A stretch of DNA of 63,142 nt, filler included, from Octopus bimaculoides (lineage: Eukaryota), in assembly GCF_001194135.2 (NCBI RefSeq). It is 7 parts of 7 records of this genome, joined end to end, with 100 filler letters (N's around TTAATTAATTAA, not from the genome) between each part and the next. Parts side by side here need not be neighbours in the genome. Positions count along the whole stretch, not along the records: positions 42,735 to 49,745 come from NC_068989.1; 6 more parts are not named here. The stretch is one strand, 5' to 3'. The position numbers and the translations under genes were made by a program. Every line of letters begins with the position of its first letter. Within the stretch, counting starts at the first letter, position 1. Below the pieces are notes generated by a model. That model was given only the letters and a program-made list of their open reading frames with translations. It searched no databases and was not told where the DNA came from. Positions 42,616-49,907 of the stretch are shown here, piece after piece.

Positions 42616-42746
42616 TATATATATATATATATATNNNNNNNNNNNNNNNNNNNNNNNNNNNNNNNNNNNNNNNNNNNNTTAATTAATTAANNNNNNNNNN
42701 NNNNNNNNNNNNNNNNNNNNNNNNNNNNNNNNNNTATATACGTATA

Positions 42747-42820
<74 letters not shown>

Positions 42821-42963
42821 TTTGGACAAAAATGTACAATTTGATTAGTGGGTTTAAATGTTGAGTAGAGCACTGGCACAGTTTAGGCTACCTGTTGTCA
42901 GCCACAGTTGTGGTACACTTCCCTTGGATTTAGTTCAGGAACTCTGCAGTCGCAGTTAGAGTA

Positions 42964-43304
42964 ATAGTATTAATTAATAGTGGGAGATGGATTTCGTATT
43001 AGAATTTTATTAGGTACAACATGTTTCAACCTTTCAGTCCGGGTCTCTTCAGGTACATGGATAAAGAAATCTCACTAGAGATTTTTAGTATTGGCTGGTT
43101 TGTTGTTATATGCCCATCAAGTTAAGGAATGAATAAAAGCAAATAATATTATAGAAACACAAAAAATTGAAATATGAACGTGGAAATCTTGCATTCTAGT
43201 TTTGCATATATATCTGAAGAGACCCAGACTGATGGGTTGAAACATATATTCTACCTAATAAAATACTAGTACGAAATCATTCTCCTACTATTATTTAATA
43301 CTAT
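42964..43304. mobile_element. Inverted repeat of Penelope-like pseudo-LTR fragments, each arm with a hammerhead motif
   Basis: Arms 42964-43052 and 43214-43304 are reverse complements (roughly 80-85% by eye) with a ~160-bp spacer; each arm reads CTGAAGA-GACC..GGTT-GAAAC then AATAAA. Confidence 0.75.
43014..43056 (-). ncRNA. Minimal type-I hammerhead ribozyme with intact catalytic core
   Basis: Minus strand GTAC-CTGAAGA-GACC(CGGACTGAAA)GGTT-GAAA-CA/TG-T-T-GTAC: stem I GTAC/GTAC, stem II GACC/GGTT (closing G.U), loopless palindromic stem III ACA/TGT, GUU cleavage triplet. Confidence 0.7.
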
Positions 43305-43439
43305 ATATATATATAGGAAAAATAGAAGTTGAAAATGCACTGAGAATAGTTAATATATTTTTTGATGGAGCACATGGAGCTACAGGAAAAATGGAGCACA
43401 TGGAGCTACAGGAAACTCAAAGACAAATATTTAAAGATC

Positions 43440-43953
43440 TAAACAGTTTCACAGTTTACACTGATTTTCAATAATTTGAAATAGAAAGAAGTGGCTTATG
43501 TCACAGTTGTTTTGCTTCTGACTAGTGTTTGAAGCTTGTTCTATTTTTATAGTGAGTTTATGGCTCAAATTAGTATATGTTTTGAATAGGGCTTGTTTGG
43601 TAGATGATAGTCACATGACTGGTCTTAGAAATGTTTGTAGGTTTCCTGCTACGTCCATGTATTAGGATCAAGTGACAATATTTAGCATCATAAGTTATGG
43701 CTGACACAGTTGACTGAACAAGTCCAGTGGTAGTACTAAACAATCAATGCTCTGAATATTTCTGTCAAGTGTTTGTAGAGAATGAACACATGATTAAGTT
43801 TAGAACCTTCTGTATGTTTCCCCACTATGTCTATGCATTAGTGTCAAGTGGCAGTATATTTAGTGCCTAAAATGAAGGCCGATACAGTTGCGTGAACATG
43901 TTTAGTTGCAATCAAGGCACTCCATATTTAATCTGTTTGGTGGGAGAGTAGAC
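43440..43953 (-). mobile_element. Possible highly decayed CR1/L2-like LINE 3' region
   Basis: Minus-strand fragments such as CIDIVGNIQK and NCDISHFFL echo CR1 C-terminal motifs; many stops; weak. Confidence 0.3.
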
Positions 43954-44753
43954 ANNNNNNNNNNNNNNNNNNNNNNNNNNNNNNNNNNNNNNNNNNNNNN
44001 NNNNNNNNNNNNNNNNNNNNNNNNNNNNNNNNNNNNNNNNNNNNNNNNNNNNNNNNNNNNNNNNNNNNNNNNNNNNNNNNNNNNNNNNNNNNNNNNNNNN
44101 NNNNNNNNNNNNNNNNNNNNNNNNNNNNNNNNNNNNNNNNNNNNNNNNNNNNNNNNNNNNNNNNNNNNNNNNNNNNNNNNNNNNNNNNNNNNNNNNNNNN
44201 NNNNNNNNNNNNNNNNNNNNNNNNNNNNNNNNNNNNNNNNNNNNNNNNNNNNNNNNNNNNNNNNNNNNNNNNNNNNNNNNNNNNNNNNNNNNNNNNNNNN
44301 NNNNNNNNNNNNNNNNNNNNNNNNNNNNNNNNNNNNNNNNNNNNNNNNNNNNNNNNNNNNNNNNNNNNNNNNNNNNNNNNNNNNNNNNNNNNNNNNNNNN
44401 NNNNNNNNNNNNNNNNNNNNNNNNNNNNNNNNNNNNNNNNNNNNNNNNNNNNNNNNNNNNNNNNNNNNNNNNNNNNNNNNNNNNNNNNNNNNNNNNNNNN
44501 NNNNNNNNNNNNNNNNNNNNNNNNNNNNNNNNNNNNNNNNNNNNNNNNNNNNNNNNNNNNNNNNNNNNNNNNNNNNNNNNNNNNNNNNNNNNNNNNNNNN
44601 NNNNNNNNNNNNNNNNNNNNNNNNNNNNNNNNNNNNNNNNNNACTCACAAAATTTTAGTCAGTTTAGGGTTATAATAGAAGACACTTGCCCAAAGTGTGA
44701 CATGATTGGGAAAATAAGCTTCTCAGGTACACGGCCAGTTCATTTACAAGATA

Positions 44754-45120
44754 CCACTGGTACTGATGATGTACCAGTCTGTTGCAGGGTTAAGCCACAA
44801 GTAATAGGGTAAACCAGTCTATTGAGAGTAAACTCATCAGTTGTCACTGGTACTAAGGGTAACAGTCTACTGATAGGTAGATTCACTAGCTGCCATACGT
44901 ACTGATAATACTTCAGTTTGTTGATAGGTTAACCCACTAGCTGCCAGTGGTGTTGAGGGTACCCTAGCCTATTGATGGGTTAACCCACTAGTTTCCACTG
45001 GTACTGAAGGTATACCAATATGCTTATAGTTTAACCCACTAGCTGCCAGTGGAACTGAGGATAATCCAATTTCTTGATGGGTTAACCAACAAACAGCCAC
45101 TGGTACTGAGGGTACACCAC
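44754..45120. repeat. 51-bp minisatellite, about 7-8 diverged units
   Basis: Unit starts at 44893, 44944, 44995, 45046 and 45097 (exact 51-bp period); consensus approximately CCACTGGTACTGAGGGTACACCAGTCTATTGATGGGTTAACCCACTAGCTG. Confidence 0.92.
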
Positions 45121-45688
45121 ATCACCCTGAAATGCATTCACTGCATTACCTTCCACCCACTAGCTAGATTGTGATTGCCATTCACTTCGACAGCACCATC
45201 TATCTATACCTTACCCCTCCCTTACTCTCTTACCAACCCATGCATCACCCTCTATCCATACACCCACACTCACACATCATCATCATCGTCGTCATCTTCA
45301 CCCATTTCTACCCTCTACTCAACCAACAGCCCAGCAATAACAAGAAGTAATAAAAATCAAAGAAATGTTGATAACATTGATAACATAAATTTCTTGAATC
45401 TTAACACAACAAAATATCTTTCAAAGAACTATTAATCAGGATATTGTCCAAACTATACTGGTCCCCTATGATTAAAAATGCTTTAGTGGCTCAAGCAACT
45501 GTTAATTCCTGACCAACGAAATTTTCACATTCCTTGTCGTATTTCTAAGCAGTTTGTGAAAAACGCTTCACTCTGTCCATTGCAGAGGCTAAGTCAACAA
45601 GGAATGACTTTTGATTTCAAAGTAACTACTTAAAGAACTAAATTGTACAAACGAATTTGGCCAAAACAAATTCTTTATTTCATAAAGG

Positions 45689-45983
45689 ATGCATAACATT
45701 CTATGGTTGACGATAATTGTTTTATACTGTTTCCAACCAGTGCAGACATGGTGGCTTTGGAATAAAAAATCTCCAAACAAATGTGTTACCAAAAAAATAA
45801 CTCCATGGTCTACCTGCAGACATAGATGCAGAGATATCTCTAAAAGACAAGTAATTGCCCTATGCACACATCATAAAGACAACCTGCAGAAATGTGCTTC
45901 AGTCTGTGGAATCACAGACACCACAACATCAAAACTATGTTATCCAAGTGGATGCCACTCATCACAATATTGTTGTCCAAACC
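45689..45983 (+). CDS. First coding exon of a secreted cysteine-rich protein with a divergent thrombospondin-type-1-like module
   Basis: ATG followed by a hydrophobic signal peptide (MHNILWLTIIVLYCFQPVQT); 10 Cys in the mature part, C-x10-C-x3-C-x11-C-x9-C-x3-C-x10-C-x4-C-x5-CC; WSxCxxxC motif; consensus donor GTGAGT at 45984 (phase 1); possible acceptor ttctttatttcataaAG ending at 45687; non-repetitive sequence. If unspliced, the ORF ends at 46036. Confidence 0.8.
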
Positions 45984-46234
45984 GTGAGTACTTACTGTTT
46001 AATAATTTTTTTTTATATCGTTTGCAAACTACTTGAAGATGCAATATATATATTGCAAACAACTTTCAAGTACAAGTGCTACCAGTTGAAAGCTCCGCAT
46101 ACCAGATGCTAGCTAGCAAGTTTATTATGTCATCAAATTTATTATGTCATCGGATTTTTTAAAGTATGCTACGCTACTGGTTTAAATTGATATTAATTAA
46201 TTAATATCAATTTCTACCCTCATTATTTAACTTT

Positions 46235-46278
<44 letters not shown>

Positions 46279-46454
46279 NNNNNNNNNNAGAACCTAAAGA
46301 ATAGGTTCAAGCACTAATATTTATAAAATATGTGGCATATTAATAAAAATCTGTAAATGTACAACCATCCAGATATCTGAGTACCTTATTTTTTCCAATA
46401 TATAATTCCTGTACATCACCTCCAAACCTTCCAATATATATAGAGAGAGAGATT

Positions 46455-46690
46455 GAAAATGAGGAAGGCCAGTTTATGGGATTACCTAAGGTTTCCTGTC
46501 CATAAAGGGTTTAGCTTTATGGCGTATAATCAGATCCAAAAATTCTGTTGGCCCTTGACCTCTTCAAAATCCTTCTCATAGAGGTCATAGGCCAACAGGT
46601 TTTTGGGATCTGACGATACACCATAAAGCTAAACCCTTTATGGACAGGAAACCTAAGGTAATCCCATACACTTCCCTTCCCCATTTTTAA
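46455..46690. repeat. Long foldback inverted repeat (MITE-like)
   Basis: Arms 46475-46563 and 46580-46668 (89 bp each, 9 mismatches by manual alignment, including a 34-bp perfect run), 16-nt loop; weaker symmetry extends a further ~20-40 bp. Confidence 0.92.
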
Positions 46691-46777
46691 TACATACTGC
46701 TCTACATCTTAAAGTGTGCTTCTTCTTTCGGATTTATATTTTCTACAAACGATATATCAATATATATATATATATAT

Positions 46778-48172
46778 CATCATCATCATCATCATCATCA
46801 TCGTTTAACGTCCGCTTTCCATGCTAGCATGGGTTGGACGATTTGACTGAGGACTGGTGAAACCGGATGGCAACACCAGGCTCCAATCTAATTTGGCAGA
46901 GTTTCTACAGCTGGATGCCCTTCCTAACGCCAACCACTCAGAGAGTGTAGTGGGTGCTTTTACGTGTCACCCGCACGAAAACGGCCACGCTCGAAATGGT
47001 GTCTTTTATGTGCCACCNNNNNNNNNNNNNNNNNNNNNNNNNNNNNNNNNNNNNNNNNNNNNNNNNNNNNNNNNNNNNNNNNNNNNNNNNNNNNNNNNNN
47101 NNNNNNNNNNNNNNNNNNNNNNNNNNNNNNNNNNNNNNNNNNNNNNNNNNNNNNNNNNNNNNNNNNNNNNNNNNNNNNNNNNNNNNNNNNNNNNNNNNNN
47201 NNNNNNNNNNNNNNNNNNNNNNNNNNNNNNNNNNNNNNNNNNNNNNNNNNNNNNNNNNNNNNNNNNNNNNNNNNNNNNNNNNNNNNNNNNNNNNNNNNNN
47301 NNNNNNNNNNNNNNNNNNNNNNNNNNNNNNNNNNNNNNNNNNNNNNNNNNNNNNNNNNNNNNNNNNNNNNNNNNNNNNNNNNNNNNNNNNNNNNNNNNNN
47401 NNNNNNNNNNNNNNNNNNNNNNNNNNNNNNNNNNNNNNNNNNNNNNNNNNNNNNNNNNNNNNNNNNNNNNNNNNNNNNNNNNNNNNNNNNNNNNNNNNNN
47501 NNNNNNNNNNNNNNNNNNNNNNNNNNNNNNNNNNNNNNNNNNNNNNNNNNNNNNNNNNNNNNNNNNNNNNNNNNNNNNNNNNNNNNNNNNNNNNNNNNNN
47601 NNNNNNNNNNNNNNNNNNNNNNNNNNNNNNNNNNNNNNNNNNNNNNNNNNNNNNNNNNNNNNNNNNNNNNNNNNNNNNNNNNNNNNNNNNNNNNNNNNNN
47701 NNNNNNNNNNNNNNNNNNNNNNNNNNNNNNNNNNNNNNNNNNNNNNNNNNNNNNNNNNNNNNNNNNNNNNNNNNNNNNNNNNNNNNNNNNNNNNNNNNNN
47801 NNNNNNNNNNNNNNNNNNNNNNNNNNNNNNNNNNNNNNNNNNNNNNNNNNNNNNNNNCTGAGTGAGAGTCCCTTTGTTGCCAGCAGGGGTAAGAGCTCTC
47901 TAAACGTTGCCCAGGCTATTCTTATTCTAGCAGCTACACTTTCAGCGCACCCACCCCCACTACTAACTTGGTCGCCCAGATAGCGGAAGCTATCGACTAC
48001 CTCTAGTTTTTCACCCTGGAATGAGATAGAAGTTGTTTCCTGTTTGTTTACAGTCTTTATTGCACCTGAACATCTGCCACAAACAAAAACTAACTTGCTA
48101 GTTAACCTGCCTTTGATGTTGCTGCACCTCTTATGTGTCCATAGCTTGCACCGGGTACATCTTATAGAGTTA
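46778..48172 (-). mobile_element. Young 5'-truncated RTE LINE (RT C-terminal part + 3' UTR + (GAT)n tail); middle in a gap
   Basis: NSIRCTRCKLWTHKRC..FVCGRC..LEVVDSFRYLGDQVSSGGGCAESVAARIRIAWATFRELLPLL, uninterrupted over 47859-48172; 3' end cgtccaacccatgctagcatggaaagcggacgttaaacgatgatgat. Confidence 0.92.
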
Positions 48173-48267
48173 AGAAGGTTGTTGTGTAAGGCTGGAAAAA
48201 TGTGAGAAGGTACAAGGTAAACTGCAAAAGGAAAAGAAAACAAAACGAAGTTGCAGTTATGCCTTGT

Positions 48268-48309
48268 ATTTCAATATTTCGGGGGGAAAACCCCTTTCTG
48301 CAGAACATT
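48268..48309 (-). ncRNA. Decayed hammerhead motif in the Penelope-like 3' region
   Basis: Minus strand AATGTT-CTGCAGA-AA-GGGG(TTTT)CCCC-CC-GAAA-TAT-T-GAAAT; A6 changed to C. Confidence 0.5.
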
Positions 48310-48399
48310 TGAAAAGAGTAGTAATTGGAAAAAGTCATTGCTCAGATATATGGTGGGGAAGGAGATATGAGAAGAAGGAGGAAGGTGACATACACAGAC

Positions 48400-48890
48400 T
48401 GGTGTTACTATAGCAACCAGTCTGCAGTAGCTCTTTCCCGTTGTTCATGGCTGGCCTCCATTTGTTTAAAAGGAGGGCTTCTATGATTCTGATGCATTGG
48501 GTTGCCTTGATGGAAACTTTGAAATTCTGGGTTTGGCACTTCCTTAAGTGTTTCTTTAATGAAGTGCTTGTATGCATTTGCTCCTTTATTCAGATGTGCA
48601 GTTTCCTGGTAAGATGCACCACATTTATTTCAGGCTACTTCATATACTACATAGGCCGACAAGCATGTTCTGATGCTGTTGATGGGGCTGTTGGCAAGTG
48701 TGCACCCCACGGTACTATCTGTGGTATTTTTCTTCGACAGAATTTTGCTCAGAGATGGACCAGTGTGCATCAACTGTATGTTGTGTCTCTCCCTGCAGAT
48801 CACATGTTGAATAGCTGCAATTGTTCTGTCATCGAAGTAGAGCAGTTTAAGAAAGCACTTTTCTAAGTTGGTGCTATGAACTTTCTTATG
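48400..48890 (-). mobile_element. Penelope-like element, decayed GIY-YIG endonuclease region
   Basis: Minus strand GPSLSKILSKK..CTLANSPI...CLSAYVVYEVA*NKCGASY(Q)ET, then KKHLRKCQTQNFKVSIK...IRIIEALLLNKWRPAMN; matches the VY-x-I-x-C-x2-C-x3-YIG-ET ... EA-x-x-I-x-K-x-P-x-LN pattern of PLE endonucleases. Confidence 0.82.
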
Positions 48891-48934
48891 CTGGTTACCC
48901 ACTTTTGTTTCATGCATCACCTCTCTCGTTGCCC

Positions 48935-49000
48935 TTTCAAAGACTAGCCAGGCTCATGGGCCCAGTTTCCTGGTTTCAGTGGCGTGTGTGTTCCCCAGCT
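48935..49000 (-). mobile_element. SINE family C tail-B fragment
   Basis: ctagccaggctcatgggcccagtttcctggtttc..ggcgtgtgtgttccccagctg is the reverse complement of tail B at ~17105-17175. Confidence 0.75.
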
Positions 49001-49184
49001 GACACCCCAACCACCAGGCCACGCGCCTCCATGTGTTTCATCCATGCAGTCATTTAACTGCAGATGATGGATAGTTGTTTTGTGCTAAGCTCTTGAGGAA
49101 TAGTTTGGTGTTGGTAGCTTTGTCTGTTGCTACATATATACATACATATGTACATATACATACATACATACATACATACACATA

Positions 49185-49429
49185 GGTGCAGGTGTGGCTA
49201 TGTGGTAAGAAACTTAGTTCCAAAACACATGGTCCTGAGTTCAGTCCTACCATGTGGTAGCCTCAGACCAACTAAAGCCTTGTGAGTGGATTTCGTAGAC
49301 GGCGTTAGGAAGGGCATCCAGCTGTAGAAACTCTGCCAAATTAGATTGGAGCCTGGTGTTGCCATCCGGTTTCACCAGTCCTCAGTCAAATCATCCAACC
49401 CATGCTAGCATGGAAAGCGGACGTTAAAC

Positions 49430-49475
<46 letters not shown>

Positions 49476-49640
49476 TATATATGTAAATGTATGTGTGTGT
49501 CTTTGTGTCTGTGTTTCTCCCGCATCACTGTTGGTTTATTTACATCCCCATAACTTACTGGTTTGACAAGAAGTGTCTGATAGAATAAGTACCAGGCTTA
49601 TCAAAATTAAAAAAAGCACTGGACTTGATTCATTCAACAA
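49185..49640 (+). mobile_element. SINE family A interrupted by an RTE 3' fragment
   Basis: SINE 5' half to 49302 and diverged 3' half after 49476. Confidence 0.85.
49301..49475 (+). mobile_element. Young RTE LINE 3' terminus with long (GAT)n tail
   Basis: Near-identical to the reverse complement of 46803-46930. Confidence 0.93.
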
Positions 49641-49907
49641 AAAATTCTTCTAGACAGTATCTTATATTTTTGTTTGCCCACTCAGTTGTATCTATCAATC
49701 TATCTTTCTGTGTATGTATAATACACACACAAACATACAAACACANNNNNNNNNNNNNNNNNNNNNNNNNNNNNNNNNNNNNNNNNNNNTTAATTAATTA
49801 ANNNNNNNNNNNNNNNNNNNNNNNNNNNNNNNNNNNNNNNNNNNNTCATATATCGAAAACCAGTAATTGCAGCGAACGACGTTATTGTTCATTTGCGACA
49901 TTGACTA

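Follow-up and report, generated by a model that had tools for sequence, protein, structure and literature searches.

The segment at positions 45689-45983 of the window (the whole stretch of 63,142 nt that was analysed) is likely to be the real first exon of a gene encoding a secreted, cysteine-rich protein that falls into no recognized family. The exon lies on the plus strand of the NC_068989.1 part, the real sequence of which occupies window positions 42735-49745 (7011 nt). This piece is AT-rich (GC approximately 0.26-0.44), is dense in microsatellites and interspersed repeats, and contains three N gaps (43955-44642, 46279-46288, and 47018-47857). The exon comprises 295 nt, i.e. 98 codons and one additional base, starting with an ATG at 45689, and it is directly followed by GTGAGT (45984-45989), so that C/GTGAGT constitutes a phase-1 donor; the last exonic bases preceding the donor (ACC/) are non-consensus. 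An in-frame TAA is located two codons 5' of the ATG, which makes 45689 the first possible start. A sequence-only reading of the window had described this layout (an ATG and, at the exon end, a phase-1 GTGAGT donor), and its coordinates are exact.

When 5.8 billion protein clusters were searched with a word index, a sole homologue of the exon product came up, P0001 (E = 1.4e-41, 71% identity, full coverage); an exhaustive HMMER profile search, which covered 1.84 billion representatives, recovered P0001 again and nothing else. P0001 is a protein of 133 amino acids that continues as 'REY...' through the GTGAGT, which implies that it is a genomic ORF call and not a transcript. Together with two allelic variants, P0002 and P0003, it is carried by Logan contigs with a full length of 1716-1718 nt. 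The contigs derive from five runs (SRR11869384, 85, 90, 91, and 94): those of SRR11869384, 85, 90, and 94 are full-length and have common ends, one end being in a microsatellite, while the fifth contig, L002 (SRR11869391), has a length of only 941 nt. The five contigs differ by 6 SNPs in 1716 nt, one of which is a nonsynonymous change in the exon. In our interpretation, they are whole-genome unitigs that are bounded by repeats and stem from several individuals of a single second species. The window and the orthologous contig (L001 in the table) are colinear from 45229 to approximately 46012, and the orthologous contigs stop 140 nt into the intron.

Features of the exon 1 locus and its surroundings, in window coordinates.
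Feature	Position	Strand	Basis
Alignable upstream region, presumed promoter and 5'UTR	45229-45688	+	blastn and MAFFT against L001, 70-74% identity; role inferred
Start codon and 20-codon signal-peptide-like leader MHNILWLTIIVLYCFQPVQT	45689-45748	+	Hydrophobic core, -3/-1 residues; 80% of nucleotides shared with the orthologue
Mature-domain coding sequence, 78 aa, phase-1 end	45749-45983	+	Same Cys framework in the orthologue; dN/dS 0.39
5' splice donor GTGAGTACT (GTGAGTATT in the orthologue)	45984-45992	+	8/9 bases kept; identity step
51-nt tandem repeat array	44746-45119		Related array also upstream in the orthologous contig
Speculative candidate terminal exon	48741-48815	+	Acceptor tttttcttcgacag/, phase-1 reading QFCSEMDQCASTVCCVSPCRSHVE followed by a stop; scan for a second exon

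The two species share 82% of nucleotides across the exon, 70-74% over the 460 nt that precede it, and 58% over the first 77 intronic nt. When measured in 40-nt windows, nucleotide identity ranges from 0.78 to 0.95 within the exon, except for the window that includes an indel; it stands at 0.95 over the final 40 exonic nt and then drops to 0.55 and 0.46 in the next windows, the step being located exactly after GTGAGTA. This fall from 95% to 55% at the donor itself bears out the earlier proposal of a genuine exon that ends at GTGAGT. The orthologue retains the ATG, the upstream TAA, the donor, and the reading frame, the latter across a 6-nt indel. Frameshifts in the orthologous locus, which the sequence-only reading had named as evidence against itself, were looked for: the indel is in frame and the frame stays open. 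The frame of the exon is, moreover, the only one that is open in both species. At the protein level, the window sequence and P0001 are 71-72% identical, with 82% identity over residues 59-98 and approximately 66% over residues 21-58. All of the mature cysteines (10/10) are found at identical spacing in the orthologue; the leader cysteine, Cys14, is not kept and is a Ser in P0001.

The encoded protein consists of the leader followed by the mature part, WWLWNKKSPNKCVTKKITPWSTCRHRCRDISKRQVIALCTHHKDNLQKCASVCGITDTTTSKLCYPSGCHSSQYCCPN. It has 11 cysteines in total, C14 in the hydrophobic leader and ten in the mature part, where they are spaced 10-3-11-9-3-10-4-5-0 (C-10-C-3-C-11-C-9-C-3-C-10-C-4-C-5-CC), an arrangement that includes C-x10/9-C-x3-C twice and a terminal CC. 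The signal peptide was called by rule, according to a hydrophobic core and the residues at -3 and -1. The Kyte-Doolittle mean over 11 residues reaches 2.6 at residues 4-14 and is at most 0.9 elsewhere; in the orthologue it reaches 2.1, with the core within residues 4-15 and no second hydrophobic segment. At -3/-1 the window has V/T and the orthologue V/S, so that the cleavage contexts read VQT/WW and VQS/WW, respectively. The leader fits an N-terminal signal peptide for classical secretion, as predicted by these sequence rules. The mature domain of 78 residues (about 9 kDa) has a net charge of about +10 and a pI of 9.4. Comparison of the window with the orthologue (K+R 13 vs 12, D+E 3 vs 2, pI 9.4 vs 9.5) shows that the positive charge is kept between the species despite the turnover of single Lys/Arg residues. 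The mature N-terminus is aromatic and basic, WWLW-NKKSPNK in the window and WWLG-KGRRKPPNK in the orthologue. Thus the 20-residue signal peptide, the WWLW start, the basic segment, the ten mature cysteines, and the terminal CC that had been noticed in the sequence alone are all present. As for the two C-x9/10-C-x3-C units, their spacing holds, whereas no significant similarity was detected when one unit was compared with the other (shuffle p = 0.5), and an internal duplication of these units is accordingly unsupported.

Searches with the products of both species failed to place the protein. Neither WAP, defensin, nor macin domains were matched in Pfam in either species. What Pfam returned was sub-threshold noise, namely AtDEF-like (E = 0.065; 14 bits, where the cut-off is 25; located in part over the leader), LOH1CR12, CCD48, and Thionin; the AtDEF-like hit was the best of these, and no significant match to a defensin or macin family was obtained. 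A phmmer search of PDB sequences gave chance matches to PP2A only (E >= 0.29), and a profile search of the PDB gave zero matches. In AlphaFold2 modeling, the precursor reached a mean pLDDT of 55.5 and the mature domain one of 59.5; the core of the latter model is at approximately 70. Both low-confidence models are all-helical, being composed of four short Cys-bearing helices with no strands, and the C-x3-C motifs C43/C47 and C69/C73 are situated on two of the predicted helices. Comparison of the mature model with the PDB by Foldseek revealed no fold match (best E = 0.94). The models lean, albeit weakly, toward a disulfide-stapled helical bundle. Judged by sequence, the protein is in no family detectable by Pfam, the PDB, or the 1.84 billion representatives, and a literature search for peptide strings of the exon found nothing. 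A match to a characterised family would have removed the novelty claimed for the exon; none appeared in Pfam, the PDB, or the protein collections.

According to the Nei-Gojobori method, this one pairwise comparison gives a dS of approximately 0.38, similar to the divergence of the flanks, and a dN of approximately 0.17; dN/dS is about 0.45 for the exon as a whole and 0.39 for its mature part. The contrast between synonymous and nonsynonymous changes is significant (Fisher p = 0.012), and the differences by codon position (23/14/18) display a weak third-position bias. The anticipation of a fast-evolving, lineage-specific protein agrees with the lack of a detectable family and with this fairly fast rate. 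In a neutral simulation, in which the observed 53 substitutions were placed at random, no stop arose in 5.9% of the trials, all ten cysteines were kept in 0.5%, and at least 70 of the 98 residues remained identical in 0.7%; the three features occurred jointly in about 1e-5 of the trials (about 1 in 100,000). Frame, start, Cys framework, and donor are conserved beyond neutral expectation in the one orthologous species. We conclude, from a comparison with one species, that the exon appears to be coding, under moderate purifying selection, and to end at a conserved donor.

The exon could instead be non-functional: an ORF that is open by chance in conserved non-coding DNA, or a relic that died recently or was never expressed. 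The flanks are alignable too (approximately 72%), which means that the whole locus is conserved by descent, and the collections searched hold neither expression evidence nor an annotated protein. No transcript or spliced product was found in those protein collections, nor was the 115-residue read-through ORF of the window, and none of the Octopus bimaculoides UniRef entries in the searched database contains the exon, which consequently lies outside those gene models. This is a weak negative, the window's own genome being evidently unrepresented: since window-species proteins with the exon are absent from the collection, missing transcripts there say little. We consider a non-functional origin unlikely, given the rarity under neutrality of jointly retaining an open frame, ten cysteines, and 71% identity, the in-frame indel, and an exon identity that exceeds that of either flank by 10-25 points. 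More improbable still is an unspliced single-exon ORF that runs through the GTGAGT to give 115 residues in the window and 133 in the other species. Such an ORF is present in both species, which show only synonymous third-position differences in the first four codons of the read-through (N-R-E-Y); beyond these, however, identity is 46-55% with indels, and the tails, of 17 and 35 codons, are unrelated in sequence and length. This divergence is the pattern expected of an intron after a conserved donor and not of coding sequence, which favors an end of coding at the donor.

The sequence-only reading had called the exon TSP1-like, a label that the searches do not support. Pfam-A hmmscan at E <= 10 detected no TSP_1 domain in the precursor, in the mature domain of either species, or in P0001; a HMMER comparison with Pfam TSP_1 had been suggested as a check of the label. 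When aligned by hhalign to three thrombospondin type-1 repeats (TSRs) of human THBS1, the exon product shared 13 columns (WSxCxxxC(G)) with a probability of 7.8%. It reads ITPWSTC (ITSWSAC in the orthologue), with a single Trp and without the WxxW(xxW) ladder; the C-x3-C is followed by RDISKRQV (GDISRRQV in the orthologue), with neither an RxRxR ladder nor alternating Arg. Like a TSR, it would be extracellular and disulfide-rich, with W-S-x-C-x3-C(-G), basic residues next, a cysteine about 11 residues later, and a phase-1 boundary. Unlike a TSR, it has no Trp or R-x-R ladder, it includes ten cysteines in 78 residues where a TSR has six in approximately 55, and it is predicted, at low confidence (mean pLDDT 55-60), to form four helices and zero strands, whereas the TSR is three-stranded. 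Membership of TSP_1 (PF00090) was rejected on the missing HMM match and the 13-column alignment. Phase-1 exon ends are typical of shuffled extracellular modules. An exon that encodes the N-terminus of a large multidomain extracellular protein of matrix or adhesion type, with a highly divergent TSR as its module, would account for such a phase-1 end and for the W-S-x-C-x3-C motif, which in the orthologue is W-S-A-C-R-H-R-C-G-D, with its basic pair and a cysteine 11 residues later, resembling the C-x3-C-x10-C of TSRs. In view of the results above, and because no multidomain protein in the searched collections shares the exon, we regard this origin as very improbable, the least probable of those weighed here. 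Cephalotoxins are cephalopod toxins of multidomain structure with real TSP1 domains (bioRxiv 10.64898/2026.04.09.716377); the protein encoded by the exon and the cephalotoxins are unrelated.

With the first exon of a family-less secreted protein as the preferred reading, further coding sequence must follow, as the exon ends in phase 1. The 3.7 kb downstream of the exon consist mostly of repeats and gaps. The sole Cys-rich candidate in a scan of this region is the putative terminal exon listed in the table, which has a good acceptor and 5 cysteines in 24 codons before the stop. Its similarity to exon 1 is not significant, and its addition would result in an odd total of cysteines; its assignment as the terminal exon is speculative. 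It is overlapped by the longest uninterrupted ORF of the piece (48441-48866, plus strand, 141 aa, TTG start, GC 0.42-0.44), which has no homologue in the 5.8 billion clusters and no Pfam match and is probably non-coding. The exon could also encode the beginning of a far larger protein. No second copy or paralogue of it was found in the 7011-nt piece. Within the exon there is a donor-like site at 45846-45854, CAA/GTAATT (GTAAKT at 45849), which is a perfect CAA/GTAAGT in the orthologue. Since the frame and the best-conserved, Cys-rich half run on past this site, it would not be the main donor; it could be a candidate alternative donor.

Upstream of the exon, two adjacent GATA-type motifs (TTGATAACATTGATAAC, 45365-45384; TTGATAGCATTGATAAC in the orthologue) are located approximately 310 nt 5' of the ATG, and this conserved pair could be a cis-regulatory element. 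The tandem repeat array adjoins the conserved promoter-proximal region and is composed of about seven 51-nt units with approximately 70% identity among them; L001:346-396 and 445-558 match window positions 45041-45093 and 44888-45001, respectively, within the array.

The remainder of the piece harbors traces of several mobile elements. A 5'-truncated retroelement ORF on the minus strand (47858-48243), cut by an assembly gap, encodes a PHD-like Cys/His finger (Pfam PHD, E = 5e-4, below the cut-off) followed by the C-terminal region of a reverse transcriptase; its best named relatives are the Octopus bimaculoides UniRef entries A0A0L8I7R5 (92%) and A0A0L8H7Z9 (71%). This fragment assigns the sequence to Octopus, to O. 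bimaculoides itself or a near relative. For 48335-48920 (minus strand), a Penelope-like element with a decayed GIY-YIG endonuclease was considered but not confirmed by Pfam. An inverted SINE-like pair is formed by 46776-46931 (plus strand, extending into the gap that starts at 47018) and 49301-49456 (minus strand), which are 99% identical over 156 nt and have an (ATC)n/(GAT)n microsatellite at their head; the latter copy is apparently inserted within another SINE-like repeat (approximately 49183-49640). ARAGORN detected no intact tRNA in the 7011-nt piece, the interspersed repeats of which we take to be octopus SINEs. A MITE-like, near-perfect palindrome extends over 46452-46691, with 112-nt arms (88% complementary) and a 16-nt loop, and matches the Rfam MIR8643 precursor far below the threshold (51.5 bits vs a gathering cut-off of 135). 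A sub-threshold type-I hammerhead ribozyme match is found at 43208-43249 (plus strand) and, in reverse complement, at 43021-43058. Its score against RF00163 is 25.8 bits vs a gathering cut-off of 34 (E = 4.5e-4 in a 501-nt search), its core CUGAAGAG ... GAAAC is intact, it is nested in the inverted repeats 42964-43022 and 43246-43304, and its folding is unremarkable (z = -1.1). The match at 43208-43249 could be the hammerhead of a Penelope-like element or of a retrozyme.

We propose that 45689-45983 is exon 1 of a single-copy, octopod-restricted gene, the product of which would bear a cleavable signal peptide and a strongly cationic 78-residue domain whose ten cysteines, at fixed spacing, would most likely pair into five intramolecular disulfides that surround short helices. 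C/GTGAGT would be spliced in phase 1 to at least one further exon, none being identifiable in the 7-kb piece. The product would enter the secretory pathway and fold oxidatively. As a compact cationic protein stabilised by disulfides, it could bind anionic targets in the extracellular space, and its Trp/Lys-Arg N-terminus would be the putative segment contacting a membrane or polyanion. By analogy in charge, size, and cysteine content only, the most likely class would be a host-defence (antimicrobial) or toxin-like effector, a tentative assignment that is open to considerable doubt. It is possible, though less likely than not, that the exon founds a new octopod-restricted secreted family with a mainly helical, cationic five-disulfide fold; this family would have arisen within the octopod lineage, and its role would be that of an effector in host defence or in venom/saliva.

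Animal genomes commonly contain orphan genes for secreted Cys-rich proteins. What is new here is a Cys framework without a detectable family that is conserved between two octopods; the kind of gene, a lineage-restricted secreted Cys-rich one, is common. The value of the locus is that of a good annotation lead and not of a surprise, and no long-standing open question is touched. Octopod genomes are reported to comprise many lineage-specific genes with mostly uncharacterised products (Whitelaw et al. 2020, PMC7656900), and the locus provides a concrete, comparatively validated example of such a gene, contained in no annotated protein of the collections searched. Provided that the locus is expressed, the repertoire of cephalopod secreted effectors would gain a new disulfide framework, and the mature domain of approximately 9 kDa is small enough for synthesis or recombinant expression, which makes both its fold and its activity testable.

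Among known systems, the C-terminal C-x4-C-x5-CC of the exon is reminiscent of the central C-x5-C-x5-CC of WAP domains; the exon, however, ends after CC-P-N where WAP has two further cysteines, the upstream spacing does not fit, and no WAP was matched in Pfam. Macins (theromacin, mytimacin) and big defensins are lophotrochozoan cationic multi-disulfide host-defence peptides. The exon product differs from defensins and macins in having neither the CxC nor the CS-alpha-beta signature, in its Cys spacing, and in having no significant Pfam or PDB match, but it resembles macins, big defensins, and defensin-like peptides in the combination of a signal peptide with a basic mature peptide of approximately 8-9 kDa with 8-10 cysteines, and it further shares with lophotrochozoan host-defence peptides its lineage restriction and fairly fast evolution. 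Unlike alpha-hairpinins and CS-alpha/alpha toxins, which have 4 cysteines in approximately 30-40 residues, it has ten cysteines and four predicted helices; in a structural analogy only, it is like them in being small, basic, and predicted to be secreted, and in presenting two C-x3-C motifs on predicted helices.
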